The position numbers were made by a program, and so were the translations under genes. A DNA stretch of 64,000 bases. It comes from Lepidodermella squamata. Taxonomy: Eukaryota > Animalia > Gastrotricha. Positions 10,074 to 51,959 of this stretch are shown here, one piece after another (position 1 is the first letter of the stretch; each line of letters begins with the position of its first letter). Location: positions 1,240,001 to 1,304,000 of the forward strand of contig JBLDXI010000024.1 of assembly GCA_047495785.1 (NCBI GenBank). Reading direction: 5' to 3'. Below the pieces are notes generated by a model that made no database searches, was not told where the DNA came from, and worked only from the letters and a program-made list of their open reading frames with translations.

Positions 10074-10427
10074 ATGGCAGAAATTATTTTACAAACTTTA
10101 GTCGTAATTTTGTCTCTGATAGCGTGTGGCCTATGCCAAAGGCAGGTCAGCGGCGGCGGTTCAGCAGCATCGCACTGGATGAGAAGTGGCGGCTCTTCGA
10201 TGAATGCAGTTCCCAATCAACCGCCGACACTAACTTTCGAAAATCAACGACAATTGGCGAACAAAATCAACGATCTTTCGAGCATTTTGTGCATTCAGTG
10301 CTTCAAGGGGCAAACCGATCGCCTGCTTCGCTGCCTCGGTCAGGCTTCGGTGGCAGGCCGCGTGACGGCAATAAAACAAAGATGTCCTCAGGCGAGGAGA
10401 CTGGCTCACTTTATTCAATCAGGCTGA
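10074..10427 (+). CDS. Secreted 4-Cys family member 1 (intronless)
   Basis: Signal peptide MAEIILQTLVVILSLIACGLC; motif LCIQCFKGQTDRLLRCLGQASVAGRVTAIKQRC. Confidence 0.85.
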   Translation: MAEIILQTLVVILSLIACGLCQRQVSGGGSAASHWMRSGGSSMNAVPNQPPTLTFENQRQLANKINDLSSILCIQCFKGQTDRLLRCLGQASVAGRVTAIKQRCPQARRLAHFIQSG

Positions 10428-11716
10428 TTATATCAAATACCTTTATTCAAAAGTTCGATCTCAAAATAAAAAAAATCGAAGATAAAATCTCATTGAAACC
10501 ACGTTTTGAATTTGATGGGCTCATAACTCAGGGAAAGTCTTTGTTGACCGAGTTCGGAAGACCTTGAGGACTTTCAAGTCATTGTAACTAGTTTGCTCGC
10601 AATCAGGATGTCGCCAAGAATTATCGTTGAGGCTGACAAGCGCGCGGTACAACTTTCGTACAAGATTAGCAGCGGGATATGCTATCCCAACAGTTTTGAT
10701 TGCGATGACTTCCTCTCTGCTAGGACTGGAGAACTCGGGAAAAAGAGTTTCCAGTGAAGCTTATGAAAGTGAGAATGCCTCAATCATCAACGTGGCCTCC
10801 TGAGATTATGGAGAGTCCCAACAGTTTTTTTTTACAAAATAAGAGATTACTTGAGAAAAATCCAGCACTACTGGAATGACTATTTATGAAGCTTTTGCTC
10901 CGGTTTCTGAATTCAGTTGCAGTAAAGTCTAAAACAAGCATTTTTTAGTGGCTTTTAGCGCCCAGGGTATATAGTACAACTGAGTGACGACGTCTCGATG
11001 AGATCATCGAATAAAGTTATGTAGTACCGTTGTTGGATTAAAGTTTGCTTACGTCACTCTTAAGGTGATAGGTTATAGAAGTGAAAAGGGGCTGTTCCAG
11101 TGAATGTAGAATGTAGCGGCAAACCTTTCACTTTAGAGTTAATCAACACGACGCTAACGATTAATTTGATGAGCTCATTCTTAGCATGAGTGTAAGAGCA
11201 CCGACACCCTGACGATTCCGGCCTTAAAACTAGACAATTAAAGCGAGCGATTTAGAGTCTGCGAAAGCGAGGCGAACGCCTAACTCATGACATCATTTCA
11301 TTACTGAAATCGACTCATACCTGAACTGTTGCGACATTGACGGGCGCTTCTTTTCATATAATAGGTGGGCGAAAGCTTTAAACAGTCTATTTAGTCACTC
11401 GTCACGTCGCTGAGAACTTATAGTTTGATGTCCCGTTATTAGGATCAATTTGCTTGTTTAATTCCGGGAAATGCCGACAGCCATGGAAATATGACTTGAT
11501 GTAATTTTGTCACTCCAGGTATTCTGATACCCCTTTGAGGGGTAGGAAAGGTGCCTCTTCGAACGATAACTCAGTGTACTACTTCGACTTGTATCGCCCG
11601 CTTGAGAATAATCAAATTCAAATGCCAATAACAAGTCATCAATAGTCAGCATCTTCTATTAAAGATAGAAATATATCAAGTTCAGAATTCTGTTATGACA
11701 ATTCCTCTCTTTAAAA

Positions 11717-11992
11717 ATGAAGATAACATCTTTACTGCTTGCATCCACCCTAATCGTATCTTCGAACTCCGTGACCGCGAGGAGAGCGTCGAATTCGAAT
11801 CCAACTCTGGCTACTTTGAGCAAGATTGATAACCTCGCCCATCGAGTCGACGAGATGACGAAGGATCTTTGCGTCGCATGCTTCAAAGGACACAATCATG
11901 ACTTATTAAAATGTCTTGCCTTCGACTCGGTCTCCAACCGAATCAGAAGGATACGACAACGATGCGATCAATTTGTGTTAAACCGTTATTGA
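11717..11992 (+). CDS. Secreted 4-Cys family member 2 (intronless)
   Basis: Signal peptide MKITSLLLASTLIVSSNSVTA; motif LCVACFKGHNHDLLKCLAFDSVSNRIRRIRQRC. Confidence 0.85.
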   Translation: MKITSLLLASTLIVSSNSVTARRASNSNPTLATLSKIDNLAHRVDEMTKDLCVACFKGHNHDLLKCLAFDSVSNRIRRIRQRCDQFVLNRY

Positions 11993-12118
11993 TCTAGCAA
12001 AGCTTATTTCTGAAATGTTCAAATTGTTTAATAAACAATGAGGCATGTTATACACTGCCACAGTATATACCACATCATTAAGCAAATCGGTGGGAGAAGC
12101 AGGTGGGTAATACTTTTA

Positions 12119-12574
12119 TCATAGCATAGCAGCTTCGGAGTAGTGCTTCCAAAACAAACTGTGAACGTTATAATTAGGACAAGCATCACGAATAAGTTTC
12201 AGTCTTGAAAAAATTCTAGTTTCCTTTGTACATTGCGTGGAAATCGCACTGTTTGTCTGAAAGAAATGCGTTAAGGAGGATTATTTTAAACGAAATCCTT
12301 TTACCAAGAAACAGGATGCGCATAGATTTTTCGATAGAGAGTCGACTCGCTTAGCTAGGACGCGGATAATCTTGATTTGATTTGGCAGCTTTTGAGTGGC
12401 GGTAATAGGACTTGTAAGCTCTTTCAGCTTATCCGTAGAGTCTACTATCATCCGAGCCAGGACGTCCTGTTCAAACCGGTGTTGGTCTTCTTTCTTGCCA
12501 ACCCCATGGATAGAGACTGCATTCACAGAAAGAGCACATATACTGATAACAAAGCAGTATGATTCAGCACGCAT
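12119..12574 (-). CDS. Secreted 4-Cys family member 3 (exons 12574-12305, 12256-12119)
   Basis: Signal peptide; spliced motif LCASCFL|TNSAISTQCTKETRIFSRLKLIRDACP; 48-nt GT-AG intron. Confidence 0.8.
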
Positions 12575-13009
12575 CGCTCTGTTTCTTCCTGCTGCTAATG
12601 GTCCAAAAAAAACATTTGACGAATGATCACGCTATGTGGATCAAAATTATGCGCGTACGTGGGTGAGATTTGACAGGCGTATTTTTTTTTCATTCAGCGC
12701 ATAGCGCGTAGTGGCCGCGCCTTTCATTAATAGACACATTAACCCTGGTTGTGGCTATATCGATCTATATATTTTTGTGGCACGAGATCTCGAAATTTTG
12801 AAATAATCAGAATAGCACTCTTCAATTATCGATAAACAGATTATTCCCATCTCCATGAAAATCGATAAAAATTCAGCACTCTCATAATTTAATCTAGTTC
12901 TCAAATTAGAGTAATAAAGAAAGTATTAGGCGGAGGTTGATTAAAAACAATTGTATTTTTAGAAAATCTGCTCCCACGCTTTAAGACATGAAATTATAAT
13001 ACCTTACTT

Positions 13010-13503
13010 TTATTTCACTTCACGGTCTGTATAGTGTTCTGATAATATATTTTGTACAGGATAACTAGGACACCAATAACGAATTGTTTTCAAGCGGATG
13101 AAAATTCTCGGCTGTTTCAAGCACTCATGCATAGTTGCATGAAGTTTCAAGTCACCCTAAAAAATAAATAAATCACACTTAAACTTTAATTAAAAGAAAG
13201 CCTTACCTTAAAGCAAGCTACACACATAGATTTAGATATTCTGTTCAGCTTATAAGCTAAACTAAATAGGAACGATCGAGTATACGGGGTAAAGGGGTCA
13301 CTTTCGCTTGGATTTGTCGTTTTCGAGGACACCAACTTTATCGCCTTAGTTGCAGCCAAGGCCATTCTCGCCAACAGATCCTGTTCGACAGTGAGCTGTC
13401 TAGCTGAATTTGGTCCGATGTCGGCAACCGACGCTAGCGGTGATATCGCTTCCGCTACGACAAGATTGAGCGCGAAGACAACTGTGACAGTTGCATAGGT
13501 CAT
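13010..13503 (-). CDS. Secreted 4-Cys family member 4 (exons 13503-13207, 13156-13010)
   Basis: Signal peptide; MCVACFK|GDLKLHATMHECLKQPRIFIRLKTIRYWCP; shares EQD(V/L)LARM with member 3; 50-nt intron. Confidence 0.85.
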
Positions 13504-16500
13504 TTTGGTTAAGCAGTGTAAGCCACTGTTTTGTAAACTATTGAAAAGATATCATCGCACCTACCATATGGATTAACAGTTTCCGTTAACAATTATGCGC
13601 TTTTGATAGGAAGATGGCCCCTGCTATGCCCACTCTACGGCCAACTATTCCCATATATCCTGATTGCCTGCAATGCTCCCTCGTGGGTTGTAATGCACGC
13701 GCGCTGATATCTATTAGGCTTTACTTGAGTTTGCGATTATTGACGATGAGGAATGCGTTAAGTAAAACGCCTCTGCCGCTACTCCCATGGGGCAAGAGCT
13801 TTAAGTTCGATAAGCTTTTTATGCGCAAAAGATTTGCGAAGATTTGTTGACAGTCTAAACATAAAACGATCAGGTTATTTTAAAATTCAGCTAGTGATTT
13901 TGAGTGTTTCAAAAATAACTTTGATCTAATACCAAAATTAGAACGCTCCAATGTTTACGCTATGAGTAACATGGACGATACTTTATTCCACAGGAGAAAA
14001 ATTATATTCTATAATGGACACCAGACCCGTTAGATGAGAATGTAATCACCATGCAATCACCAATCTTGCGATTTCTGAGACAAAAGGAAGAGGACTCCAG
14101 AATTTCCATCATATGGCCATCTTGGTAAATCCTAATTGACCACTGAGCTTGACCCACAGCTATCAGAATAAGTATAAGTCGTAAGATTTGGAGCAAAATT
14201 GGAGCTGTTATGAAAAAGAGTGAACAATTATTGTTCAGTGAAATTCATGATTCTGTGATAAGTTGAATACCTCATCTACGTGTAGCGCAGCTTTGAACCA
14301 TCTAAATCACTGGTATTTTCCCTTAATTTATACAGCTATTTCATCTAAAACAAAAATCTAGTGACCATAAGTAATTTGATTAAATTGCGATTAAGACGTG
14401 GCCCCACAATTCCTAAATTGCCCTTTGCTGAAAGGTGGTCTGCAGTCTGGATCAGCAATTAGATGAAATGTGACGATTTCTAACAAGCTTCGAGACAAAT
14501 CAGGAAGATGAGTGCAGGAATAACTGTTGAAATTTGAAACGAGAAAAAATGTGAAAGCTTTTCGCGAGATCACATTGCTGCATGCTTTCTTCCGAATAGA
14601 GATGGAATTCGAAATTCCGCACCTCGTCACTTGCACATTTCGCTTATTAATTAATTTTAACTGATAGTTTGCAAATTCTTCCTAAATTTTTTGATAACTC
14701 ACGTGAATTTAGAAAAGTTCTCAAGAAAAGGTGACACAGCGATCGGAAATATGCCCACCTCCTTTTGCCTTAAAATGTCTTAAAAAGGCTTTTTGCGGTT
14801 ATGCGGCTTAGCTCGAGTAACATGGCTTCTCCCGAAATAAGCATCGTTACGATGTTATAACTGAAATTAGTCGAATGGCACGTCAAGATTTTATTTTGCA
14901 GCCTCCGTCTCTTGACGTGGTGATTAATCGAGTTGAAAATCAGTAGGAATTAGGCATTCGTTCAATGCTTTGTTTCACGCCTGAATCGTAGACGGAAATA
15001 CGTAGATATTTCGGCTAATTTTTGCCGGCTCGAGTTCACTTAAGACAAATAGGACCCAAGTTCTCGCAAAACTCTTCTTCGGTCTACGGATTTCCGACGG
15101 GGCAGCATAAGAAAATTTCTGTATTAATATGTGTATTAATAAGTAATATTCTCAGCATTACAGGTAGTCAGGATGTGGCTTTGTCGAAATAGCCAGTAAC
15201 TGCTCCAGTTTTAGGATAATATAGTTTCGATTGATTTCGATATTCCAGCGTTTTTCAAGATCTTTGGCCCGGATAAAGGAAAGTTTTAATTAATCCAACA
15301 AATTTTACACCTGCAGGTTTCAGTCCCGTAGCTAGAGAGATTTTCAATTCTATAGCGTTATTGCCGTATGAAGGTTCAACAAGATTCTCTAACGGTAGGC
15401 TGGGTGATTCACCATGATGTCGCTTGGCTGATTGGCTACGCGTTAGCACGAAACAGGAGTCGCCCGAGCATTCAACTTCGTTGTGATCGTGCTGAGATGT
15501 TATAGTAAAATGTCCCTGTTATCAGATAATTGATTAGTGCCCATCGACATTTCACCACTTTCAAACATCACCTCAACTAGAGTTAGCTTGTGTTGACTTA
15601 TCGCCTAGTACGTGACTGCTACTTTAGCTGAGCCCGTTAGTGTCCATCACGGACTTGGACAAACTTTCACCGCCTATTCAAGACTCCAATTTGCGCTTAC
15701 CCTATTTCGACTGATAGGCTAGCGCAGTGGGTTAGGGTTGTGGGCTTACTCATTTAATTGTGGGATGCTTGAATGAGAGATCGTGGTTCAACATCCGTGT
15801 GTGAGCTCCCTATTGCTTGGATAGTGCAATCCAGACAGATCGGCCACTGAAGTTTTTGACGCGCAATTCAAGGAAGACGGAAATACCTTTTGCAAAATTA
15901 TACTTTATACATGCTGTCTGAATTTTGCCGCGAGGTAGGTTGTTTAGGACAGTTTCAAGTTTAGACTTTAGACAGACGTCGAGGTATTTCCCCTGGGGGA
16001 TTGCTTCCTTGTACAAATCGAGGTGTATTAAGAGAGGGGCGTGTCCATAATTGCCGAATATTGTTACCACGCACGTCAAGGGATTAAGCATTTGGCACCG
16101 TCCATTACGTCACCTCGCAGTTGTGATGTGCCTCTCTTTATTGTAGGCGTTTCACACACAAGTTATATCTATCGCCGATAATGGCGTCATATTCTTTAGC
16201 AGCTGGTTGTCAGTTTAACAGATTTTAAGCTGCGATTCATTAGCATTGAAAGTAAAAAGAAGAGGTGGCTAGGGCGAGCTTCGAGGCAAGCTAACATCGT
16301 AAAATTTGACCGTCCGCCTTAATTAACATTTGTCCAAGTTTTGCGGTTTTTAGGGTTCAAAAAGCACAGCTTGTCCACGATCACGAGTTGAAAATAATTG
16401 AATATATCTGCAAAGGAAAATGTCCTGTAACTGATTAACTACATCATTTGTCCGTTTTTTCCAAGTCTTCCCAAACTCTATTTGTCATGGCGAATTTCCA

Positions 16501-16880
16501 TTTGATGATAAGGAACATTTCTATCGCCTGACTATGGCTATTACGTGGCAATGTGCAATAATTCCAACCTATCAATCAGTCGCAATAAAAATTGACAGTG
16601 CGACAACGGCGATTATCAAATAGGCAGAACGAATAAGGACACATAACACCTGGCTCTTCCACTAACTACGTACATCTCCGCGAATGAGGTCCGTTTTCAA
16701 TTAAAATGGCAGAAATAGAACACACGTGGAAACTTCGTGCCTTGTCTCTTGCTAAACCATTGACGAGGAAGTATCTCATTTTTTAATTGTTTATTATTGA
16801 AATTTGCGCGATATTCCGAGGAGTGCAGCTGATAGCTGAAAGGTAATTGTAGAGGTAACAGAAATGATGATAAACAAAAG

Positions 16881-17247
16881 TCAGATATCAGTTCCTGACT
16901 CTGTTGGCACCTGCGTTAGACTTCGAAGAAGATTCTTCAGAACAGCCTTGTTATTACAGGCATGATTCTGCTTGAGTATCAAAGAGACGCGGCGTTTAAT
17001 GCTCGGTTCGCCCAGGCAAGTTAGCATTGACGCCCATTTACCCTGAAGAAAACGCAAGAATAAAAATTCGAATGAAAGAAATCGTATTTCGAAAAGTTAC
17101 CTTAAGGCACGTGACACATATTTTATTAGCCATTTCGTTGAATCTGCTTTGGCGTTGAGTTGTGGAAGCCTCTTTGTTCACCGAAGATGTGAAGACTTCC
17201 GCCAATAACAGGAAGGCCAGGGAAAGCACAAGTATCAGTGTTGCCAT
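16881..17247 (-). CDS. Secreted 4-Cys family member 5 (exons 17247-17101, 17042-16881)
   Basis: Signal peptide MATLILVLSLAFLLLAEVFTS; ICVTCLK|GKWASMLTCLGEPSIKRRVSLILKQNHAC. Confidence 0.85.
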
Positions 17248-17976
17248 GATAAAACCGCAACTATAAAAAACAGTAAATCCCGTAAAAGCATCTCCTTTCA
17301 CTTCTATACTGTTGGTTTTAATCAGTGACTTTTGACCAATATTCATGCAGCAGGAGAAATGAAACGTTCATTTCGTATGACTTGGTAAATCTGATTAATT
17401 TCATCGCGGACACCTAGGAGACTTAATACCAGTGACAACATGACTGTTGGCTAATTAATTAGTAGTGACACGTCAATCAAACGAAAGGGTGTTTTTTCGG
17501 CTAAAAAAACCGACGACCTTGGATGGGCAAACCTGATGCAATTTTCGCTCCTCTATCCCAATTCTACGACAGTGATGGTGTTTCGGTTAAGGACAATAAT
17601 CCTGAATCCTTGAGATGTTAAAAAGAGAAAAAATTGGTGATTTTATGTAGCGCATCTTGTTTTGATATGCGCGAGAGGCCATGGATGACCAGAGGGCGTC
17701 AAATAAAAGCATCGCGCAATCTCTCTCAGGTGCAACTTTCTCCGCTTTTAATTTGTTTGTCAATTCGGTCCCCGCAGGGGCCTTGCAGAGTCCACTCAAC
17801 TTCGCTTTACTCACTTGATTTCTCGCACTCTTGGGATTGCTGGCGATTTTTGACAACGCATAATTTGAATCATGTGATAACACTTCATATGAGTCAATCG
17901 CTTCAATTTACTATGTTTTTCGTCAACAGTATTGAAATTTAAGAGTCAGAAGATTTGAAAAATGTAGAAAAAAAAA

Positions 17977-18338
17977 TCAGAGTTTGTATTTCACAATTTC
18001 CAACAACTTAGTGAATTCCCTGCGCTTACACGTCCGCTTATGCGATTCGATGACCAGTATCCTCCCGGCGATGTCTGGCTGGTTTAGGCACATTAGCATT
18101 GTCGGCCAATCACCCTGAATCGTAACATATAACTAAAATTTGATTTAGTCAGTGGTATAAAGCCACAAACCTGTAAGCATTTCACACAAATTCGATTCGC
18201 AGTTTCGCTTAATTGCTTCGCCAATCCTCGGATGAATTTCACCAACTCGCCCGTTGGTCTTGCTGGCGGCTGGGTCGTTTGAGCCTCGGTCAGTAGGAAT
18301 AACGCAAGACTCGAAAATATGACTATCAAAGCATGCAT
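17977..18338 (-). CDS. Secreted 4-Cys family member 6 (exons 18338-18171, 18114-17977)
   Basis: Signal peptide MHALIVIFSSLALFLLTEA; ICVKCLQ|GDWPTMLMCLNQPDIAGRILVIESHKRTC. Confidence 0.85.
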
Positions 18339-18657
18339 TCTAGAAAATATGATTATTGCATATGAATTCCGTTTTCCTCACAAAAAAGAGAACTACGTCA
18401 TCGGACACGTCAATTACGATGAGAGGGCCTAGAGTGGTTATATTTACAGCGTTTCCATCGCTCCTAATAAATCACGTATAGCGAAAAAATAACGGGAAGG
18501 TTCACACTTTATCAGGAAGCTGCAATTGATGCTCTTACTGTGTTTTGCACTTACGCCATAATTTAGAAAGCTGAATGGTCGTCAAGGCAGTAAGTAGGTG
18601 GATGTATTCGTAGGCAATAAATAAGTTGCGTGCAATCGATTTTACTACAATGCATAT

Positions 18658-19851
18658 TTACTGATCATTGCCACTCAACATAGTAATCAAGCATGCTACA
18701 GAGAAGATAATAACGGCTGAGGCTAGAGAACTGAAAAATGCCAAGTCCACCAAACGACAAAGTCGAATTTTGCCGTACAAAATGCTAACTTTTCGCTCAG
18801 TGTACGCCTGATTAGAATCACAAATAGCACAAATGACAGCAGCATAACACGTGATAAGCATAGCTGCTAGGATTTGGCTGAAAATTAAGTCGGACAGCAT
18901 GATGTTGCACGGGGTTTTCGGTATGTTTGCCAGCACTTGAGTTTGAGCGACAGTGAATGCCAGGAGGACAGTTACCGCGAAACTCGGGCGATCATTTGCA
19001 TCAGGCGGTATTAGCCCGGTAGCAAATTGAACGATCAACAACACGAAGCAAGGTGCCACAACATTCAATCCGTAATAGAATGGCTCGCGTTTTATCACGT
19101 AGCTAAATTCGATTACGTGGCTATTTGAAGACGTGAAATTAGTCACTTGAAAACTGCCCCAGTTACGCATGAGTTGCCATCCCAAGTTCTTTGAGATGGC
19201 CTCTGAAAACACAGAAGTTTCCACCGCTGTTATGTTGATAGCAGTATCCGGGAGCCATACGCCGAAAAACATTCTACAGAGCTGCTGGTCGAAAGGAAAG
19301 TGCTCGAAGCTCATGTCACAGTAATGCGAAAAAATTCCAGCATAGCTGTATTGCACTACCCCTTCCAACGGGAAAGCCGTGATTGCTACAGCCGTATGTT
19401 CTGATAGGCCGAAATCGTCGCAACTGATAAGTTGAATAATTAGAAATCAAACATTATTACATCAGCTTTCAATTAACCTATTTTCGTGCACTATGCCAGG
19501 CCTCCAGTATTCGGAAGTTTCCAGAATATTCCAAAATTCTGGAACCACTCTGGTTTGCCTATAGCGATGAGCGGCTTCCTTCACGCAATCGACGTGGAAT
19601 CGAATGAGCAATAATCCGTTCAGCGATATCGATTCTTGAAGGTCATCTACGTCGTTGAACCGAAAGTACTCCAAATGAACTTCAGTTGGAATCCGGCTGT
19701 CAGATGAGTTCAAGTATTCATTGGGATGAGTTGCTCCTGGAACAAAATTGCATTCAGTAAAAATCAGCGTTCGAATATCGTCATCTCTGCTGATAGCGAA
19801 AACGACCTCGCTTAAAGCGACAATGGAAAAGACAATTTCGAGAAAATTCAT
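18658..19851 (-). CDS. Divergent Cys-loop LGIC subunit A (exons 19851-19478, 19423-18658)
   Basis: Signal peptide, WRPG, Cys-loop CDMSFEHFPFDQQLC, pre-M1 KREPFYY, four TM helices, short M3-M4 loop. Confidence 0.9.
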
Positions 19852-20042
19852 TTTCTGCACTGCGCTGCCATTTTTATTACGAGTCTGGGGGCTGCTGATC
19901 AAACATGAGATCACGAGTCAGACACTGATTCATTTTTTATTAACAATAGGTAAATAATTGCTAGCGAACCCGGATATGAATTACACAACCTATACAGTCA
20001 CGTGCGAGACTGCTAAAGATTTTTGTCGATTAATTGAATTTT

Positions 20043-20165
20043 TCAAGTCAGCGGCGTCATGTTAACTCAAATCAGCGACACGGTGTAGATGAAAACAATA
20101 GAACAGCGAGCATGCTGAAGAAAATGATATCAGTGCATATGAAAATACGAAGACTTTTCTTGACA
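20043..20165 (-). pseudogene. Relic 3' end (M4) of an LGIC-C-like gene
   Basis: Nucleotide match to 22979-23100 (GGTGTAGATGAAAACAATA...GCTGAAGAAAATGATATC) with indels; the rest of the gene is absent. Confidence 0.7.
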
Positions 20166-20169
20166 GGTC

Positions 20170-21540
20170 TACAGGTTTTGTTGCTTCTGTCACCAAATAT
20201 TCGCTGATGAGTCGACTCTCGCTAAAATGTTCGCAATAAGTTCGACTTTTGCTTTGCTGCTCGTTACAGTCCCACCACCGCTTGATCTCAAACTCGAGAT
20301 GCCCTGCTTGCGCCGTCTTTTGTTCCGCAACTTATAGGTACGCAGCAACCTATAAAAGTTCGGATTATATAAAACTATCGCTTTTGCCTTGGAATGGCTC
20401 GCAGTCTTTACGGTTCTCATCAGCAATTAGACCAATAGTTAGATTGAGTGTATACTCCGGTTAAGAGCGCAAGCGGTTTTCGAGAAGAGCTGTTGCTGTT
20501 GAGGTCGGAATCGTTTCAGAGGCTGTGAACTCTTGGTTTGAGTCTTGGTTTGGGATTTTCTCGCTCCGATCTTCCACCAGTTTGCCAATTCGTAATGCAG
20601 CTGACTCTCAGCTTCGTAAACGGTAAAGCTTTTTAACAGCGCTGTTCAAGCTCACTTATCCTAGCGCGGCGATTCAAATGAAGAGCAGGGATAGCGTAAG
20701 GGCAGTTATTTTGAAAAACCTGTAATTGGACGAGTTGTGCCTTGGCCTCGGACGCGATTGCAACAAACCAAAAAGTGGTGAACAAACGAACAAAGGCAAG
20801 ATTGGCGGGGCGGCGCCATCGGTGAGACCAACTGGGGCGGCTTACGACTAACGACAGAGCAGAAACATTAAAGATCTGTCCATACCTTGCACAGCATCCA
20901 TATCGATTTTCCCAGCACGCGAAGAATCGAACCGACGACAGTGCCTCCAAGCTCCGAGATCGAGCCTTACGCTGGGAGGTCGACGGGAGAAACGACAACT
21001 TCACTCCTCAAGACGTTGCCGGCACATACAGGCCACGCGGCGATTAAATTCAGGCTGAACGTGCCCCTCGACTTTTGCGAACGTGCACCTGAACCGACAA
21101 CCGTCAGATGTCAGATCGCTGGCATAAGCATTAAAATTCCCTGCCAGGAGAGCTGGTTAACCTGAGGAGGTCGCTTGAGAACGTAGGCAATGAGTAGGAC
21201 GACTTCGGCGAACCTTGCGGTGCGCCGCCGCACTGCAAACGGCCTCATTTCAGTCATGTAAAATGTAACGCGATTTGTCTCCTGAGCCGCCTTTTAGATG
21301 ACCCTGAAGAGGAATACCGCCCCTCCAACGAAGCGTATTGCTAATGCCGTCCTGCATGTGGGCCTTCACCGTCTTCAATTTGTCAATTTCCTCCAGCACT
21401 GATGTGGTCGCAAAATGTCGCAAAACGATGGGCGTGAAAAGTCGGTTTCGAACTCTTTGGGCTTCACACTATGACCGCAAGCCAGTCATTCGGTAGAATG
21501 AGTGTAGAGTTCATCTGCTAACTATATCTTTTGATGTTGA
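20170..21540 (+). mobile_element. Probable decayed non-LTR retrotransposon 3' portion (restriction-like-endonuclease type?)
   Basis: More GC-rich block interrupting the LGIC duplication; broken frames with AAIKFRLNVP, a VSPEPP segment and VGFELFG, loosely resembling RLE-clade C-termini. No intact motif seen. Confidence 0.3.
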
Positions 21541-21603
21541 TGAATAATTAGCAAAGCATGTATTCGTAGGCAATGAATTGGGTTAAATCGATTTCCGTAC
21601 CAT

Positions 21604-22793
21604 TTATTGGTCGTTATCATTCATCATAGTAATCAAGCAAACCGCAGAGAACACAATTACAATTATAGCAAGGCTACCGAAAAACACCACGTCAACCAAA
21701 CGGCAAAGTCTGATTTTGCCGAACAGAATTTTAACTTTTCGTTCAGTGTACGCCTTGTGAGAATCACAAATAGTGCAAATGGTAGCAGTGTAACACGTGA
21801 TGAGCATAGCTGCTAGGATTTGGCTGAAAATTAAGTCGGACAGCATGATGTTGCACGGGGTTTTCGGTATGTTTGCCAACACTTGAGTTTGAGCGACAGT
21901 GAATGCCAGGAGGACAGTTACCGCGAAACCCGGACGGTCATTTGCATCAGGCGGTATTAGCCCGGTAGCAAATTGAACGATCAACAACACGAAGCAAGGT
22001 GCCACAACGTTGAATCCGTAATAGAATGGCTCGCGTTTTATCACGTAGGCAAATTCTATAATATGACTAGTCGTAGACGTAAAATTAACCACGAGGAATG
22101 TGCCGCTGTGGCGCTGAAGTTGCCACCCCAAATTCTTTGAGATAGCTTCCGATGTAGCCGAAGTTCCCACCGCTGTTATGTTGATAGCAGTGTCCGGGAG
22201 CCATAAACCGAAAATCATTCTACACAGTTGTTGATCGAAGGGAAAGTGCTCGAAACTCATGTCACAGTAATGCGAGAAAATCCCAGAATAGCTGTATTGC
22301 ACTACCCCTTCCAAGGGGAAAGCTGTTATTGCTAGGTTTGTGTATTCTGACAGGTCGAAATCGTTGCAACTGAAAAGCCGAATCGTCAGAAATAAAGCGA
22401 AATATCAATTATAATAAACCTGTTTTCATGAACTATGCCAGGCCGCCAGTAATCGGAAGTTTCAAGAATTGTCCAAAACTCTGGAACCACCCTGGTTTCC
22501 CTATACCTATTAGCCGCTTCCTTCACGCAGTCGAAGTTGAATCGAATGAGTAACAATGCGTTCATCGTGACAGATTCTTGAAGGTCATCCACGTCATTGA
22601 AACGAGAAAACTCCAAATGAACTTCAGTTGGAATCCGGCTATCCGATGTGTTCAAGTATTCATTTGGATGCGTGGCCCCCGGCACAAAGTTGCATTCAGT
22701 CAAAATGAGCGTTCGAATATCGTCATCTCTGCTGATAGCGAAACCGACCTCAATCAAAGCGGCAGTGATAACAAACTTTGTGAGAAAATTCAT
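21604..22793 (-). CDS. Divergent Cys-loop LGIC subunit B (exons 22793-22420, 22369-21604)
   Basis: Close paralog of subunit A; identical Cys-loop; same phase-2 intron after HEN. Confidence 0.9.
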
Positions 22794-22978
22794 TTTTTTG
22801 CTCTGCGAGGATATTTTTTATGTTTTACTGCGATACATGCGGCGGCTGATCAAACATGAGATCACGAGATTAACTGGTGATTCATTTTTTATTATCACCG
22901 GGTAAATAAATAATGGCAAAGTACGGATATGAGTTAGTCTGCCGGTATACATGTGCGAATGTCAATTTATTGCTTTTT

Positions 22979-24223
22979 TCAATTCAATGGTGTCATCATC
23001 ACTCCAATCAACGAAATGGTGTAGATGAAAACAATAACAGCGAGTATGCTGAAGAAAATGATATCTGTTAATCGGCAAATGCGAACGTTTCCCTTGCCAA
23101 TGACTTTCACGCAGTTTTCAGAAAAATATTTGCTCGTGTCGCAAATTGCGCACATGACTGATGAATAACAAGCTATGATCATTGCCGTAATAGCTTGACC
23201 GAAAATAAGATCAGCCAATAGGACATTTGATGGCGTTTTAGGAACGTTGGCCAATACCTGTCCTTGTGCGACCATGAAGGCTAGGAGAACAGTTACAGCG
23301 TAACTAGGTCGATCAGGTAAGTCAGGTGGGATGAACGCACAAGCGAATTGTACTATGGTCAGGACGAGGCTGGGGCCTAAAATGTTAAGGATAAAATAAT
23401 CCGGAACTCGTTTCATGCTGAAGTAAAAGCTGATAACGTGGTAGTTGGTGTTCAAATAAGGCTTAATTGTATAGTTCTGCGAAAGCTTGCCGATTGTCCA
23501 TCCAAGATTTTTCGACGCAAAGCTATCGGTGCCACTTAGGCTTTGCAAATCATGAATTTTAATTAAGCTGGTGGGCAGCCATATTGCGAATTGAACGGCG
23601 CAGAACTGCTCATCGAAGGGGAATCTAATCGTTTTTGAGAGATTTTAAGGAAATAATTTTTCGCTAAAGGCTATACCTCTCAAAAATCATGTCGCAGAAG
23701 AAAGAGAAAAGCCCGGAGAAACCATAGTGGACCTGGCCTTCGAAAGGCAGAGCTGTGATAGCCGGATGCACCTCCTCTGTCAAGCCGTAGTCAGTGCAGC
23801 TGTAAATAGTACATTTATGATAATTAAGTTGCTCAATTACGCAAATTGCCTGTTCTCATTAACCACACCTGGTCTCCAGTAGTCATCGGTATTCATCATA
23901 ACCCAATAAGGCGGAACTGGCCTAGTCAAGTTGTGCCTAAAGGCGGATTCTTTCACGCAGTCGATTGTGTAGACAATTAGAAAGATTCCTTTGATTGAGA
24001 CAGCCTCTTCTAGGTCATCCACCTTAATTAACCTATTGTATTGCATCATCACGTCCACCCGGCTTGGACCACTCGTTATGTTGTACTCATTAGGATGTGT
24101 AACTCCAGGCACTACGTTGCATTCTGTTAGAATCTGCGTTCGAATGTCGTCATCGCGGCTTATAGCATCGCAAAACGGAAAGCATAGGGTAGCATAAAAA
24201 ATCAAGCCAGTGGAATTGTGCAT
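22979..24223 (-). CDS. Divergent Cys-loop LGIC subunit C (3 exons; introns 23849 or 23840 to 23800, and 23676-23625)
   Basis: MHNSTGLIFYATLCFPFCDA-ISRDDDIRT; Cys-loop CDMIFER|FPFDEQFC; M2 DRPSYAVTVLLAF; four TMs. Confidence 0.88.
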
Positions 24224-26212
24224 TTTTACAGCAAGCTCTAAGCATTCAAAAAGCAGTCTAGCATTCGAAAAGCTCGCACACAGGTCGACTGTCTCAGGAG
24301 ACTTCGTAGTCGAATTTGTCAATGCGCAGAGCTTTATCGATCCATTTAATGCTTTTAGGAAAATTTTCTCTCCCGTAAAACCTCGCTTAAAATCACAAAT
24401 AACGTTGACTGATCACGCGCAACAATCATCTTGATTTTTTTACAACGAGTGATGTCTCTATCCATGTCTCTATTCAAGTGTGCGCGACCTGAAATGTAAA
24501 TTAAAGGAAGGAAGCTAATTTTTTATTGTTTAAAAATACAAAAGCACCGGCCACGTTTAGGCTTGGGCTCACTAAAATATTACAATACAATATTATTAAA
24601 AACCCAGACAATAGACATCGAAATATATCTAGGTATAAAAGCGAATGTACGTGGGCAATACTCATGACTATCACACAAGGCAGGAGAAATCATTTTTTTT
24701 TCATTTCATCTCCATGATAAGTTGATTGGAGAAGATGGATTCGGAAAGCTAATGAAGTTCGACAAAATGTGCAAATTATATACATAAACCATAAACCTAA
24801 ACCTATAGTCAAGTTCATTTTGTCCTTTATGTGCATCTTTCACTATTACCGTCATTGATTGAATGTGCATCATTGGGTATGATGATCAAAACTGTTTACG
24901 GCGAAGAGCCACTCAAGTATCCTGACATAGAAAGTATCCTTTTGCGCGCTAGCCGTGCTCACCGTGAAACTCAAACCTACAAAGTTTCGAAAAATGAGAC
25001 ACTTAAAATGGCAGTGTCGTGCCCAAATAGCAACGTTCTGTTGGCGCTGAGTCTCTGGCTTGTGCCATTAATTATTGTTGAGAACCATAACTACCTTTCG
25101 AAATAAGCACCCGAGTAAGAAGCATGGAGTAAAACCATAAACAGTGGAAATAAGCTTTGAACCGAATTCTTATGAGATACCTCTTTAATGTGGTTTTATA
25201 TAATGGATAAAAAATCGGTTTCTCAAATACCTGCGCACACCTGTCTACTTGAGTCCGTTTTTTCAGGCCATGTCGCACACCCCATTTTGTGAACAGTGCG
25301 AGTGTACGTTGAACTTTTACTTATGCGAAAAGTTGAAGATCCAGTGAGAAAAGTATCAAATGTTTTGCATGCGGAGGCACAACGTTCGGCAGCACTCAAC
25401 GACAAATCGAACATTAGTAAATCCACCTTTATTTTTTCGCTGAACATTCCCATCGCCAACGCCATGCCATGTGTTTGGTCTGTACCTATCGGCGTTAGAA
25501 TGAACCAACGTTCTAATGACCGATACCGATTAGGACAAGCGTAGGATTATGGCTTCTCGAACAGTTGTGAGCTAACAATTGATTTGTGATACGATTTCTG
25601 CTGGGGCGGCGGCGATTAGGATGAAGCAGGATTACTTTTGGGCGCGCAAAACAAGTCTTTCGATCACACTCTTGAAAATGAGAGCTTTACCCGGGCATAT
25701 TATACGTCATTGCTTGGGAATAAGAGACAAATATAAAGCTTTGTTAGTGTTTTTATCTTGTTACTGCACCAAATCAAAGTTCTCCGTAAACTTGATAGTG
25801 CGCCACGTTTTCACGTAAAATTACACTAATTTCCAGCCTCCAGCCAGATTTAATTTACGTGAATGGTGATAAATTAGGACATCCATTAGCGAATGAATCA
25901 TAAAATTTGGGAATGGTCATTTTAATAACTTGATTACTCGCCATATCAATTGCCGTCGTAGCTAACTGCGTGTCCTTGATATACTCCGAATATGACCTCT
26001 TGTTGGACCAATTTAATCAGCATCATAATTTGAATAATTAATAAAATGCCCAGTTTACCAATACTTCTCTCTCAATTAAACGTATTACGCCCTGATTGAT
26101 CAATTTCTCATTACCACGAGGCTAAGATTGGTTTTTAATCTCCTTTAATCCAGGACCCGCGCAGCCAACAACTTTTGAAATTAACCTATTTTCTATTTTC
26201 CAGAGTTTTAAA

Positions 26213-26586
26213 ATGAAATACGGACTGGTTGCTTTCGTTTGCGTTTTCTCGATCGTTGCGGAAAGGTCACTATGTTTTACTTCCCAGCATATGAATTTCA
26301 TCCCGCAAATGAGTTTCCTTATGGGTCACGTGGCATCTCTAAATACTGACTTCGGGCAAAACATGACTTCGAGTGAAGCCGGACGAAAAATGTTTCAACT
26401 TACGGGCAAATATTGCATTTCATGCTTTAGGGCAAGTTGATAGGAATTATCTTTGAATGAAACAATAATTTATGATTTCAGGGCGATTCGTCTAGAATGC
26501 TGCGATGTTTGGGCCTCGGAACTGTCCTACAACGGGTGAACACACTTATGCGATATTGCCCTGACATGTATTGGCCAATGAACTGA
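26213..26586 (+). CDS. Secreted 4-Cys family member 7 (exons 26213-26431, 26482-26586; GC-AG intron)
   Basis: Signal peptide; YCISCFR|GDSSRMLRCLGLGTVLQRVNTLMRYCP; donor AGG|GCAAGT at the family-conserved intron position. Confidence 0.8.
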
Positions 26587-27127
26587 TATAGCCGAATCAT
26601 TGATGTCATCAGGGGACAAACCCTGTCAGTCATATCATTTCTGAACTGTATCTTCGCCTAGAAAATTTTCCATTTCTTAACTGATGTTGATTGTCTCTTC
26701 GTACTTTGCGAAGGTGAAAATAAATAGATGATTATGGAAGCTTCTCTAGGATGTTCGATAATTCGCCCTGTAAATTCCTAAGTCTGCTTCTTAAGCCAAC
26801 CTACAGTCGGAAATAGCTACAACCCACGAAAAATCGCTCAAGCGATTAGATTTAACTATAAAAACCAAGTCTGTTAGCTGTGACATGTCAAAGATCAATT
26901 TTCAGCTTGCCAATCCCAATAAATGTAACTCGATTTAGTCTGCAGGTTTCCGCTAATACATGCGACGTCGGGATCATCTTATGGAGTGACTTCATTACGA
27001 AGAGGCACATGCGTAAACACCTTGATACCTTGACGTTAATTGATCATCTGGAAAGTCGTTGAGCACGTTCTCTAGTTCACATATTTTTATCTCAACCTTA
27101 CGGGTGCAAAAAAACACATTTTTAGCC

Positions 27128-27481
27128 ATGAACAATTTTGAGAAGTTAACCATCCTCGCGCTAGCGATCTCAACCGCAAGTTATTTCATCGACGCTAAGT
27201 CCGAGAATGGTGTTGATCACGCTGGATCGGCTCGAATTGACCATCTGATGAAGCAGCTCCTCGTGGCGTTGGTTACGCAAGATCCCAAGTCGAAGGACTC
27301 CATTTCGTTGGTTGAAATCGCCGAGCAAGTGCGCGAGCTGTCGGGTCGACTCTGCGTCGGTTGTTTCCGATCCGACTCCGTCAGGATGCTACGCTGTCTG
27401 AGTCAAGCGCCGTTCCCCGAACGTGTTAAAACGATCCGAGAACGCTGTCACATCGCAAGAAGACTCTCAACAATGTTTTGA
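27128..27481 (+). CDS. Secreted 4-Cys family member 8 (intronless)
   Basis: Signal peptide MNNFEKLTILALAISTASYFIDA; LCVGCFRSDSVRMLRCLSQAPFPERVKTIRERC. Confidence 0.85.
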   Translation: MNNFEKLTILALAISTASYFIDAKSENGVDHAGSARIDHLMKQLLVALVTQDPKSKDSISLVEIAEQVRELSGRLCVGCFRSDSVRMLRCLSQAPFPERVKTIRERCHIARRLSTMF

Positions 27482-32497: not shown

Positions 32498-35400
32498 ATG
32501 GCAGGTCGCGCATTCGCGTTTCGTTCTGCCTCTGAGGATCGTAAACAATTTGACTACGATAATAATGATTTTAGTTACCACGCGCCGCCGGTCGCTACAT
32601 TAAGTAGTTTAAAAGCCGCTCTACTACCGAAACCGCAGTCGATCGAGATGTCGTTCTCGATGTTTAAGGAGAACTTCTCCTCCGGCATCAAGTCGATCAG
32701 CCGCCGGTTAAGTTCGTCCGACATTCCGTCGGATGTTCAGGACGATCCGAATCAACCGCAGCAACAGCCGGGCCAGGCGGCAGCGGCTGCGGCGAGGCCT
32801 TATTACCAGCAACAGGTCGCGCAGTCCGGCAGCCAGCAGCAATTATCGCAGCCGCAACAGGCGCAGAGCCAACGGCCGACAAATTTGCCGACGACACAAC
32901 AGCCGGCTCAGGCGACGTCGAAAATGGCGAGTGCACCGGCCTCGCCGCAGCAAACAGCTGTTCCGCAGTTTGCTCGCGGGCTCTTTTCAGCGGCTAGCAA
33001 TTACGTGACGGCCGCGGTGGGGTCTGGAGGACCAGGTGGGAAGGATGGTGCGAATAAGGGCGGCAAGGTCGTGCTGGTTGTCGATGATGAAGGCAACGAC
33101 TGGTCGCGGTTTTTTCGCGGCAAGAAAGTTAACGATCAAGAAATTCGCCTCGAACAGGTTGGACCTATTTCTCATTCATCGGATATTTTTTTATTGTTAG
33201 GAATAGTTTAATTTTGGGTTTTGAAGAAAAAAATATCGTCATTGGGCTAATGAAACCCGCTAAGTCTACAGGAAAAATCCTATGTACTTAGCGGGTTTCA
33301 TTAGCCCAGCGGCGATATATTTAAAATTCCTCCTTAATGAAAAAATGCGAATTTTTCCGCATCAGTGTTTTCTATGGTTCTGGTGCTCTGGGTTACTTCA
33401 AACTTTCAGGAATTTGATTTTTGATTTTTGAATTTCGATAGCAAATTAATTCTCATTCTAATTCGTCAGCATACTATTGTTTCAAAATTTTTGAAATATA
33501 GGTATGCGGCATATTTTCGTATTTTAAGGAGCATTTAAAATTCTAGTGGTTTTGAAGTACATCTCGCAAGCTGGCCGCTAATTAGCTCAATGGCGGTGAG
33601 ATCCATCGGTTAGGCATGATTAAGACAAATTGAGGCATTTCCAGGGAGCTCGAACTCGAAGCCTGATTTTTGGAAATCTCGTGTTGGAAACCAACGTTTA
33701 GGGCGTTCACTTGATACACCCAAAAATGTATTCGAATTCTCGGTCATTAATAGATGATAGCTGAAAAATGACTAGCTATAACCAGCTGATATCTATTCAT
33801 CATTTCGACGATTTTTAGACAATTTTCAACTTTTACAATTCATATTATAAATTTTATAAATTTTATAAAAAAAATCTGGTGAAAAATTTGCTCTTCAACA
33901 AACCTTCAAAAATTCTCAAAAATCATTCCACCGATTTTTTTTAGTTCCAATGTTATCCAATTTTATCCGAGATTATTTAGAGCATACCTTTTTATTATAC
34001 ATTATACCATTTATTATATTTTTCTAGGCTGAATTTCGAGAATTGCATTTGGTCAGCATGCCACGCGGTGAGGTCGTCGTTGAAATTCACGCTCAACGAG
34101 GCGGCGCGACAGTTCAGCGCTACTTCAAGCCCGATATCGTTCTAGTTCGCCAACACGTCCTCAACGACCAACCAGGCCGGTTGGCTAACGACGACAATCG
34201 GCGGCTGATTGTCGGCCTTGACACCGCTGGAATGCCCGCTGTCAACTCTCTCGCCTCGATTTACAATTTTTCCGATAGAGGCTGGGTGGTAAATTTGAAA
34301 TTGTCGGAGAAAAATCGCTTTTTTTACATGTCATTTTTTATTCAGTACTCGAACTTATTAAAAATTCAACGCCGATTTGGTGCTGAGCGCTTTCCCCTCA
34401 TCGAGAAATCTTTTTATGCAAATTATCAAGAATTGGTGAGTCAATCGTGAAAGAAAATATCGATTAACCAACCCATTCATTATTTTTAGATCGAATGCCC
34501 GCCTACATACAAGGGCCCGCTCGTGATTAAAACCGGCAATGGCCACATCGGGCTGGGGAAAATGAAATTGGACGCTGGACTGGACATACGAGAAATCGCC
34601 CACCTGTTGATGGGCAGCACAACGGGCGGCCAGTGCTACCTGACCGTCGAGCCTTTCATCGAAGCCCGAGCTGATATTTACATCATTAAAATCGGAGCTG
34701 CTTATCGTGTTTACGCGTAAATTAAAATTTGAAAAAAATTGAATTTATTTTAATAATTTTATTAATTTTTTAAGGCGAAGATCAGCGCACGGCCACTGGA
34801 AGGCGACTGTTGGTCCGCAGCAAATGGAGACATTACAGCTGAATGATCGTTACAAATTTTGGGCCGATCAATGTGCTGAGCTGTTCGGCGGCCTTGATAT
34901 AGTCGCAATTTCAGTGATGCAGGCGAAAGATGGTCGCGAGTTCATTGTCGAGGTTAAAGATTCAACTGCACAATTGTCGCAAGAGGGCATCCACGACCCG
35001 GAGCGCCAACTTATTGCCGATTTATGCATTTCGAAGCTCAGCTACTTTTCGCGAGATACTACGCTAAGGTAAGATGCGGAAAAATCTCAATTTCGCACAT
35101 CACAATAATATATAGTGAAAAATCACGCTTGACCTAATTTAATTGAATGAGGCGATGAATGAATCATAAAAAATGGGTTTAATCTATATAATAATGGCTT
35201 CATTATCGTCCGTAGAAATGCGCAGCAATTTCGAAACAGGTTTATTTGTTTGAAAAACTTAATTTGTATGCGCTTCAATAGACGCATAGTTTGCCCTATT
35301 ATTGCGACTTGATGAATTTTTTCCGAACGCTTTTCCACATTTATGATGACAATTTTTTTATTTTTTGAAATTTTTCTTCTTCTTCATCTTTAACTTTGTG

Positions 35401-40282: not shown

Positions 40283-42207
40283 ATGAGCAATAAAATGTTG
40301 ACCTTGAACGGAGTTTTCACGCGAGAAGCACCGCCATTAGCCGATGAGTCATCACTTGTTTCCCTAATTGACGGCAATGACCTGCCGCCGAGCAATGATT
40401 TCATCGAATCAGCGCAAACTGCGGGTCAATTTACGCAGCAGCGAGTTCAAGTTTTATGGCTGCTCACCGAAACGCCTGACCTAGATGATTACTCCGCACC
40501 GCCGATTTCTTGCTACACCCTGTGGCTTATCAACGAATCGTCGCAGAAATGCAAAAAATGGTCCGATGCGATAGTCGAAGCGCTGAGTTCAACATGCTAT
40601 CCAAGTAATAATTTTTCGATTTTTTTAAATTCTATTAATTTTTTTTAAACAGCTCTAGCTCTAAGCTTTTTATTTCGAAATGGAGTCTCAACCGGTATAG
40701 CTGCCGAGGAGAAAATTTCGTGGTGGCGAAATTTGCTGGGGTCACTGATAAATTTCACGGATTTATCGCGGGATTTTCGAAAAAGCATGCTCGAAAATGA
40801 TGCGGTAGGAACCCTTATCGACTACCTGTCAAACAGCTCCGTAAAACAAGCTGCCGTCAAAACCAAGGTAATATTCTTATTTTTATCAATTTTTTTAATT
40901 TTAATTTTTTAATTTTTATTATAGGCTCACGAAGATATTTTATGCATGGTGATGGCAATTCTCCTTAACCTGGCGAAAATGTCGTCAGGGAAGCAATTTT
41001 TCAACAAGGCATCAGCGGCGAAAATTCTTCAAAAATACCTCGACTACCCTGGGGATGTTTACATCAAAGCTGTGTCAGCACTTTGCATTGCCGTTACGAC
41101 GATTGACAACGACGAAAATGCGAAATGGCTGGTGAAGAATAAAATCCCGTCTATGCTCAAGTCATTCTACGAGGAAGGTGCCACATCGGCGGATAGAATG
41201 TTCGAAAAAATGATCCCATGCCACGAATTCATCGACGCCCTGAAAATACTGGCGTTAAACGAGGGTATCAAAGATCAGCTGGTTAAGGAAGATATTCTCA
41301 AAATAATTTTGGATCTCATAAATTCTAACCGATCTGGACTGGAACAATATCGAGGTATCGAGCTGCTGTGGACGCTTTGTTTCGGCAAAACTGGGGTCGA
41401 AAATTGTAAAATGATTGCTCAAAATCAAGAAATTATCGCAGGCTTGAGTCGAATTTCCGGCGATAGTAAGGCCTCAGAAGACTTGCGGGATCTTGCGAAA
41501 AGAGCGTCGGCCTTCATCGCCGATTACGAATCAAAATTGCTGAATAATATCGCGAAAATACCAGCCAATGAAACGAGTGTGGATGGTCCAATTTTTATCA
41601 GTTACGAGAGTCGGTATCAATATATGGCCGAGAGGATTCGGGATCTTTTGGAGGCAAATGACTTGGATGTTTTCATGGAAAATCAAGCCGCTATTAAGAC
41701 CAAGTAATCCTATATTTATATTTCAAAAATTAAAAATCAAATTTTTTTCAGCATTCTTGAAGAGATTTCGAAAAATGTGGAAAATGCGAGTATTGTTATT
41801 TTAGCTTTCTCGGAGAGTTATCGCAGATCGGCCTGTTGCAGAACTGAAGGTGAGTCAGAATGCCTAAAAAACTGAAGAAAATATAATAATTTTATTAAAG
41901 CCGAATATGCATCAGCCCTTAACAAGAAAATAGTCCCAGTTCGAGTTGAAAAAGGGTAATTATTATATTTTATTCCAATTTTACTTCTTTCACTCCCGAT
42001 TTTTCTACAAGGTATACAGCTGATGGCTGGCTAGGCACACTGGTCCCGGCTAAAATGACGATAGATGCGTCCGAGGAAATTGAAAGTTTGTGGATGGACA
42101 AATCTGGCTCGGATTTACTGACTCGAATCGTTGCTCTGAAAACTGGTAAAATTTCGGCGGAAGAAACTAAACCTGAGTCTGCTCAAGGTCGATGCTCTGT
42201 TCAGTGA
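40283..42207 (+). CDS. ARM-repeat + TIR domain protein 1 (exons 40283-40604, 40653-40867, 40925-41703, 41752-41849, 41901-41955, 42012-42207)
   Basis: Helical ARM-like repeats (ILLNLA, ELLWTLCF); TIR motifs IFISY, SESYRRSACCRTEAEYA, KKIVPV, YTADGWLG; ends in CSVQ. Confidence 0.88.
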
Positions 42208-50480: not shown

Positions 50481-51959
50481 ATGTTAGCCACTACTGTATT
50501 CGTCTTGCTTGCAATTCAAGGTATTTCACACTCTATGAAGCAATAATCGCGTATTTACTTTTTCCTTTATTTAGACGCGTCAGCTCAGATAACAACGCCA
50601 GCAGTTGGTACGACTTTATCGACTGGTACGCCAACTCAGCCAGCTGCTCCTAGCTCTTCAAGCATTCCAACCTCAGCAGCAGGGGCTCCGACTCAACCAG
50701 CAGCGGCTCCAAATAGCTTTTCGACCATTCAGACCTCTGCGGTTACACCAACTTCTATCACTGCTTCTAGCAATCCAACTCGTACAAGCGCCTCGGTAAC
50801 TCCTGATCCTAACATCGGCGATCCATACCCGTCAACAACTTCCGAAGACTTGGTTGCGCAATGCAAGGACATTAGCCCGAAAATCCGATGCCCCCGAAAC
50901 AACGACCAGCCTAATCCTATCAACTTCGTCTTCATCATGGACAGTTTCGGCGATGTCACTGATGCAGATCAAACTGTTTCGTTCACTATGATAATGGTCC
51001 TGAGCTGGAATGTCACGACATGCAACGCTTCAACCACTGGCTCTGGTCTTACTAAGAAGGACAGGATTATGGTGTCTGACGTCACAGAAGTCTGGCGACC
51101 GATAACCTACTTCACGTCAAGCGCCGACGATACGAGATTGAAGAACGACAACATTGCTGATGACATGGACATCGTTTTCATACCCGACACTCCTAACAGG
51201 ACGCTTCAATTTTACTGGCAAAAAACCGGCCCTGCTGTTGCTAGCTGCGATCTGAATCTGAAAAATTTCCCAATGGATGTGCAAAATTGCACCTTTGAAT
51301 TCGCCCTGAAAGAAACAGTTAAATACGTGTATTTCAAAGACATCGACTTCTACCCGCCTGATTTGGGCGATGGCGATTCCTGGTACTCTTTAGGCAGTTC
51401 CTTTTACACTACCACCGAAGGCTATGCCTCTGATTCCGTGCTGAATCGACAAGGTGTTAGTCGTGCTCGTTTTTCGATTCGAATGCGCCGCCGGCCAGCT
51501 TTTTACTTCTATTCGTTGCTAACCCCTAGCTTCGTTCTCGCGACGTTAACCCTGGCATCGTGGTTGTTTGACAACTCTACAGCTGAAAGAGCAACATTTC
51601 AAGCCACCCTGCTTCTAACTCTGTTTGTGGTGCAGTCCGATTTCATCAATGCAATGCCTAAATCACCCACTCGAATTTTACTCGCTGATTATTTGTTTTT
51701 CTTAATCGTTTTCACCGGCGCTTGTACGTTGCAATCAATGTTCATGTTTTGGCTAGCAAGTGTCTACATGCCGATGGTTGAAGATAGGGATGAAGATGAC
51801 GCCAAGCCATGCATCGATGGCGAGAGAAAGTACAAATGCTGCAAAGGCCGTTTAAATATTAAGGTGGTTCGACTTTTTGACCTGTTTTGTTTTTTGATCG
51901 CTCTTATCGCTTTTACTATCTTTACAATTATTACTTTTTCTTTGACCCTGGCGCCGTGA
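50481..51959 (+). CDS. Divergent Cys-loop LGIC subunit D with mucin-like N-terminal extension (exons 50481-50520, 50575-51959)
   Basis: Signal MLATTVFVLLAIQDASA, about 85 aa S/T/P/A-rich tract, VWRP, Cys-loop CDLNLKNFPMDVQNC, RRRPAFY, four TMs. Confidence 0.9.

Follow-up and report, generated by a model that had tools for sequence, protein, structure and literature searches.

Several described protein systems share features with the genes considered here. The CHH/ITP/MIH hormones (PF01147) are secreted and comprise a helical module of about 70 residues, in which a long helix ends in a C-x2-C pair that is presumably bonded to Cys on later helices; CHH/ITP members are known from Ecdysozoa and not from Spiralia. 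In Tim9/Tim10 and CHCH proteins (twin CX3C/CX9C), two disulfides staple antiparallel helices, and the saposin-like proteins, such as caenopores and NK-lysin, form multigene families of small, secreted, helical and disulfide-held proteins in small invertebrates. Aplysia attractin and the Euplotes Er pheromones are likewise small secreted helical bundles of aquatic organisms, which are fixed by disulfides, specific to their families and quickly evolving outside the Cys residues. In this study, a stretch of 64,000 nucleotides of the gastrotrich Lepidodermella squamata, hereafter the window (assembly GCA_047495785.1, contig JBLDXI010000024.1, forward-strand positions 1,240,001 to 1,304,000), was analyzed with regard to a cluster of eight small genes, g1 to g8, encoding very probably secreted proteins with a common four-Cys module. 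As judged from the sequence, these genes represent an orphan family that matches no described family or fold and appears to be restricted to this animal lineage. The published genome of L. squamata is the first for the phylum (PMC11660948).

Compared with the systems named above, the family features four Cys with spacers of 2, 10 and 16 residues, whereas CHH proteins possess six conserved Cys in three disulfides with fixed spacers, of 12 and 12 residues at the corresponding places. The Tim9/Tim10 and CHCH proteins differ in residing within the cell, in the mitochondrial intermembrane space, in their symmetric CX3C/CX9C arrangement and in having no signal peptide, while the family proteins begin with a hydrophobic leader, show an asymmetric C-x2-C...C-x16-C pattern and have no sequence match to them. 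Saposin-like proteins carry six Cys in another topology, and attractin and the Er pheromones are held by three disulfides with other spacings and have no detectable homology to the family.

Six-frame motif scans and explicit gene models yielded exactly eight genes between positions 10074 and 27481 (Table 1), and no other occurrence of the halves of the four-Cys motif was found by the six-frame scan of the 64-kb window. Both the number and the positions of the genes, five of which need splicing, agree with a preliminary description of this DNA made from the sequence alone. Genes g3 to g7 each contain one intron of 48–58 nt in phase 0, located at the same codon position, two codons after Cys2 (following C-x2-C-[FL]-x), and their reading frames run into a stop two codons past Cys2 unless this intron is removed. 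The introns of g3, g4, g5 and g6 are bounded by GT..AG, and the donor of g7 is GC, a feature not mentioned in the preliminary description. The g7 intron reads as a GC-AG intron, a minor but regular class, the other possibility being a broken donor site. For g5, the second Met is most likely the start, because the hydrophobic leader begins there.

Across the cluster, the spacing follows C-x2-C-x10-C-x8-R-x3-[ILV]-x3-C. All length changes, which concern the first spacer in g4 and, in g5 and g6, the last one (3 residues elsewhere), amount to three additional residues, or about one helical turn, and an insertion of this size would preserve the register of the helix. This pattern and its exceptions correspond to what had been described for the window genes. 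Each of the eight proteins has a hydrophobic stretch of at least ten residues at its start (mean Kyte-Doolittle value 2.2–3.2) and contains exactly four Cys after residue 25. Each gene would thus encode a signal peptide, a poorly conserved spacer of 20–70 residues and a conserved basic module of about 60–70 residues. The N-terminal regions, previously characterized as highly variable, are indeed poorly conserved overall; however, those of g3 and g4 share an EQD[VL]LARM stretch and are therefore not wholly unrelated.

The genes are transcribed and spliced as predicted. A public sequencing run from 2015, marked 'RNA?' in its record, was compared with positions 12210–18209 of the window, a 6-kb stretch covering g4, g5 and most of g3 and g6. 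Contigs of this run were confined to exons, namely those of g3, g4, g6 and, with faint cover, g5, and the depth was zero in every intergenic bin of the stretch. Exact splice joints were detected for g3 (12256>12305, skipping 12257–12304) and for g6 (18113>18170, cut +1, skipping 18115–18170), both with CT..AC ends on the plus strand; these correspond to GT..AG on the gene strand and thus to exactly the predicted introns. In g4, the contigs stop at both exon borders and the depth within the intron is zero, with no joint contig among those listed. Intron-skipping transcripts, the absence of which had been named beforehand as evidence against functional genes, were thus found for two members, and the multigene family is genuine and transcribed.

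Profile searches of the source genome (121.2 Mb, 151 contigs) revealed 18 family loci with E-values reaching 1e-21, so that the family lies far beyond chance. The largest cluster is that of the window contig (C24), with three intronless and five spliced genes, followed by contig C9 with four loci, all spliced at the same position as the window genes. Three loci on C1 and one on C4 are intronless. Of the two loci on C20, one (C20:1911416-1911598) is spliced and carries Lys in place of the motif Arg. The other (C20:1967437-1967650) is closest to a C1 copy; its signal peptide and module are intact, but the frame is interrupted by a TAA five codons ahead of Cys1, and the locus probably represents a null allele or a young pseudogene. 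The members can be described by a signal peptide, a long helix that ends in L-C-x2-C-[FLI], the motif C-[LTM]-x7-R-x3-[ILV]-x3(6)-C, often followed by P, and, where an intron is present, its phase-0 position two codons after Cys2. This combination was found in all eight window genes and, with minor exceptions, in nine other intact loci of the genome and in nine to ten metagenome proteins.

When 1.84 billion representative proteins were searched exhaustively with the family profile (HMMER), ten matches resulted, nine of them being true relatives and one a false match to a Cys-repeat protein. All nine relatives are unnamed proteins of 70–134 residues from metagenome assemblies of the European Nucleotide Archive. 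The contigs encoding them are animal DNA with genes for collagen IV, RB, FTCD and receptors, and at least four family members are arranged there in a tandem cluster, some being intronless and others containing an intron at the same codon. FTCD on one of these contigs is 54–76% identical to that of L. squamata, so that the relatives originate from a different, possibly related animal. A word-based protein search with the family alignment retrieved only the same metagenome proteins and, in addition, P0016, whereas g8 alone gave no match in such a search. Furthermore, a scan of Joint Genome Institute metagenomes resulted in 33 pattern matches, none of which was confirmed as belonging to the family. 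In the close metagenome relatives P0006 and P0014, Cys4 is replaced by Phe or Tyr and three Cys remain; these proteins may form disulfide-linked dimers or be decaying copies. The invariance of the four Cys and the Arg, as initially claimed, therefore applies to all eight window genes and is broken by the C20 paralogue with Lys and by these two relatives.

A second version of parts of g4 and g6 was detected in both the DNA run and the RNA run, at about the same depth as the reference version. It aligns over exons only, for example with 16 differences and 3 gaps in about 224 nt at g6, and the introns hold many substitutions and indels between the two versions. As both versions occur at approximately single-copy depth and the assembly contains one copy, the second version probably represents the other haplotype of a very heterozygous animal. 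At g6, seven differences are synonymous and one is a conservative replacement (Arg to Lys, after Cys4); at g4, six are synonymous and two codons are replaced, both in the variable N-terminal part. One Cys codon changes synonymously in each of the two genes. For the closest pair of paralogues, located on contig C1, the rate of synonymous change (dS) is 0.85, and that of nonsynonymous change (dN) is 0.18 within the module versus 0.43 across the N-terminal part, corresponding to dN/dS values of about 0.2 and 0.5, respectively. The module is under purifying selection, since the haplotype differences are almost all synonymous and dN/dS is about 0.2 in the C1 pair; a lack of such selection on the Cys and Arg codons, which would have spoken against functional genes, was thus not observed.

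A tree of the modules shows very long branches of about one change per site and resolves only the pairs g3/g4, g5/g6, c1b/c1c and c9c/c9d. This indicates that the family probably grew by old tandem duplications, with the neighbours g3/g4 and g5/g6 being sister pairs. The ancestral gene would have carried the phase-0 intron two codons after Cys2, which some copies later lost. Judged by its sequences, the family is old and under purifying selection rather than rapidly diversifying, in accordance with the ancient distances between paralogues and with its being common to a second species. The proposal of rapid diversification is therefore contradicted by the mostly synonymous haplotype differences, the module dN/dS, the old paralogue distances and the sharing with the second species.

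Structure prediction using AlphaFold2 resulted in two models that agree on a helical module with Cys placed so as to staple the helices. For the g8 module (model 1; 25 aligned rows), the predicted local distance difference test (pLDDT) score was 80, with helices at 10–28, 33–41, 46–55 and 57–63. For the mature metagenome relative P0001 (model 2; 74 residues, 35 rows), the pLDDT was 89.6 and the predicted template modelling score 0.75, with helices at 2–29, 33–41, 45–55 and 59–73. In these models, Cys1 and Cys2 are separated by one turn where helix 1 ends, Cys3 lies towards the end of helix 2, and Cys4 follows directly after helix 3. From these positions we infer that Cys1 pairs with Cys3 and Cys2 with Cys4; Cys3 and Cys4 are placed apart in the model, which makes a bond between these two unlikely. 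The module would accordingly consist of one long and three short helices, and the two Cys that close helix 1 would bond to Cys3 within helix 2 and to Cys4, at which helix 3 ends.

Searches for described relatives of this module gave no significant result. Pfam searches with g1, g2, g8 and all 34 aligned family pieces at E up to 10 produced scattered chance matches only, the profile search of PDB sequences gave nothing below E 0.38, and Foldseek found no PDB match with E below 3 for either model. The best VIA-align Z-scores (5.2 for model 1 and 6.9 for model 2) referred to generic helical proteins and were within the stated noise for helical models; Tim9/10 and TIM22-complex chains were among the weak structural matches (Z 4.5–5.1). 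The ESM Atlas searched by shape yielded only partial overlaps with unrelated bacterial proteins. Searched by features, it gave no usable match for g8 and contained P0001 letter for letter, with a score of only 0.75 for the best match. Saposin-like proteins (SapB) had no Pfam match and were absent from the fold lists of both models, and neither attractin nor the Er pheromones appeared in the fold-search lists. Membership of the insulin/relaxin-like proteins was rejected, the family having no adjacent CC pair and no corresponding Pfam match, and likewise that of the Erv/ALR sulfhydryl oxidases, as no Evr1_Alr Pfam match was obtained and the module comprises about 60–70 residues versus a flavin adenine dinucleotide-binding helical bundle of about 100 residues.

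The combination of a confident helical model with no significant fold match is in line with the suggestion in the preliminary description that the Cys module is new, as are the profile searches of Pfam and of the 1.84 billion proteins, in which no described family was found. The family was also rightly taken to be lineage-specific: there is no Pfam, PDB or fold match, and its only detectable relatives outside the source animal come from one second animal. With respect to the overall interpretation, the profile searches, fold searches and AlphaFold2 models bear out a new, lineage-restricted, disulfide-stapled helical family, and the haplotypes and dN/dS values remove the rapid diversification from it. 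The family is thus defined by gene models that were checked, by RNA, by signs of selection and by a confidently predicted fold unlike anything solved, and it represents a compact new disulfide-stapled helical scaffold as well as a candidate lineage-specific signalling or defence system. Such genes are missed by standard annotation, because five of the eight need an intron of about 50 nt to be read. Gastrotrichs are among the least studied animal phyla, and in animals that have been poorly sampled, secreted Cys families confined to one lineage are common. The finding is solid yet not surprising, and its interest stays moderate as long as neither a function nor a receptor is identified.

Taken as a whole, the best explanation is a genuine lineage-restricted multigene family with a stapled helical module and, preferably, a role as ligands, an overall reading to which we assign slightly less than an even chance. 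The function itself can be put forward only tentatively: by analogy, the proteins may be soluble extracellular binding ligands, i.e., hormone- or pheromone-like signals, in which the receptor would be bound by the rigid helical module, whose helix 3 carries the invariant Arg. A ligand is favoured because the charge is not kept across species, because the invariant Arg is of the surface type, and because there are precedents of clustered families of small disulfide-held ligands. In Caenorhabditis elegans, for instance, roughly 40 insulin-like genes represent a large, divergent and clustered set of disulfide-held helical ligands. The isoelectric points (pI) of the metagenome relatives range from 5.2 to 9.9, a spread which fits a ligand better than a membrane-active peptide. 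Several points weigh against this explanation. Signal peptides were judged by hydrophobicity only, the disulfide pairing was deduced from secondary-structure positions and not from coordinates, and the RNA nature of the 2015 run is only guessed in its record, though the intron-less joints argue for RNA. Consistent dibasic processing sites are absent before the module, and the 17 basic paralogues scored in this genome fit a role in defence equally well.

Defence or digestion is the main rival function: the proteins would be cationic, disulfide-stabilised helical effectors acting on microbial membranes, like caenopores or NK-lysin, and a multigene family would provide breadth against microbes in a bacterivorous animal. 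The basic character of all 17 modules scored (pI 8.9–10.5), the many divergent tandem paralogues and the compact helical fold agree with this. We nevertheless regard it as rather unlikely, because charge is not conserved (pI 5.2–6.7 in three of eight relatives), the alleles are under strong purifying and not diversifying selection, and neither sequence nor fold matches the saposin-like proteins. Improbable, by comparison, is a structural role in the cuticle or scales, the egg envelope or the secretion of the adhesive glands. Gastrotrichs possess a scaled cuticle and adhesive tubes, and small, basic, secreted-looking, multi-copy proteins, several of which were assembled from whole-animal RNA, would suit such a role; the family, however, lacks repeats, low-complexity and cross-linking motifs as well as additional free Cys, and the globular module is a highly ordered one.

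Descent from the CHH/ITP/MIH hormones, with strong divergence and loss of the N-terminal Cys pair so that two disulfides remain, would agree with the common order of elements: C-x2-C closes a long helix, the third Cys sits on a short helix, and the last Cys belongs to one more helix. The CHH precursor 5b5i_B was also among the eight weak Foldseek rows for model 1; its identity of 17% was the highest in the second look, its Z of 3.1, with a root-mean-square deviation of 4.0 Å over 52 residues, is within noise, and CHH was not listed among the fold matches for the better model 2. Membership was rejected, as PF01147 matched none of the 34 family sequences even at E up to 10, and the four matches that it had in the genome stayed under the cut-off and did not coincide with any family locus. 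Given also the spacers of 10 and 16 versus 12 and 12, the four versus six Cys and the range of CHH within Ecdysozoa, such a descent is very improbable, and the resemblance to these hormones is only architectural.

Least probable of all is that the proteins are secreted ligands or modulators of the adjoining Cys-loop channels. Three tandem, very divergent Cys-loop channel-like genes split the cluster between g6 and g7, the nearest of them ending 320 bp upstream of g6 on the same strand, and in the other animal one family member was located about 0.8 kb downstream from a gene for a Cys-loop receptor, again on the same strand. However, the first-look search gave 2530 Cys-loop candidates, so that this gene family is very strongly expanded for a genome of 121 Mb; of the family loci elsewhere in the genome, a C20 locus is the only one with a Cys-loop signature within 10 kb, and an adjoining Cys-loop gene was found at one of five loci of the relatives. 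Furthermore, the two channels adjoining family members had no tblastn match to each other at 1e-3. A conserved linkage to Cys-loop channels, being not above chance, was therefore rejected. ANF_receptor (flytrap) genes were located within a few kb of the relatives' loci in two places; in L. squamata, 1192 ANF_receptor candidates were counted, none of which is listed within 10 kb of a family locus. The linkage to Cys-loop or ANF_receptor genes thus looks like chance, with a small residual probability. Returning to the preferred role as ligands, the idea that the family forms a previously unknown class of protein ligands for expanded receptors, e.g., Cys-loop channels or Venus-flytrap (ANF_receptor) receptors, is highly speculative; if true, it would mean a ligand–receptor system that is specific to the lineage and has arisen in gastrotrichs.

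Table 1. Family genes and other features of the 64-kb window.
Feature	Position	Strand	Exons and intron	Length (aa)	Remarks
g1	10074-10427	+	intronless	117	putative signal peptide, variable region, four-Cys module; profile E 2.5e-21
g2	11717-11992	+	intronless	91	
g3	12119-12574	-	exon 1 12574-12305; intron 12304-12257 (48 nt, GT..AG); exon 2 12256-12119	135	
g4	13010-13503	-	exon 1 13503-13207; intron 50 nt; exon 2 13156-13010	147	first Cys spacer 13
g5	16881-17346	-	exon 1 17346 (probable start 17247) to 17101; intron 58 nt; exon 2 17042-16881		last spacer 6
g6	17977-18338	-	exon 1 18338-18171; intron 56 nt; exon 2 18114-17977	101	last spacer 6
g7	26213-26586	+	exon 1 26213-26431; intron 50 nt, GC donor (GCAAGT..CAG); exon 2 26482-26586	107	gene model only
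g8	27128-27481	+	intronless	117	
Cys-loop channel-like genes, first set	18658-24322	-			three tandem genes; third gene 22979-24322
Synapsin	32498-33211	+			exon, N-terminal domain
V-ATPase subunit H	40946-41707	+			exon matching the Pfam model
TIR domain	45952-47013	+			open reading frame
Cys-loop channel-like genes, second set	50850-57502	+			three genes

The channel-like genes between g6 and g7 match Neur_chan_LBD with only about 38 bits. Two of the three carry the canonical C-x13-C loop with FPFD, and the loop signature was not found in the third. A second set of three Cys-loop channel-like genes is located on the plus strand of the window (Table 1). In the animal of the metagenome relatives, a PF04199 Cyclase gene was found 5–7 kb from family members at two loci. 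The window also contains exons of a synapsin N-terminal domain and of V-ATPase subunit H as well as an open reading frame with a TIR domain.

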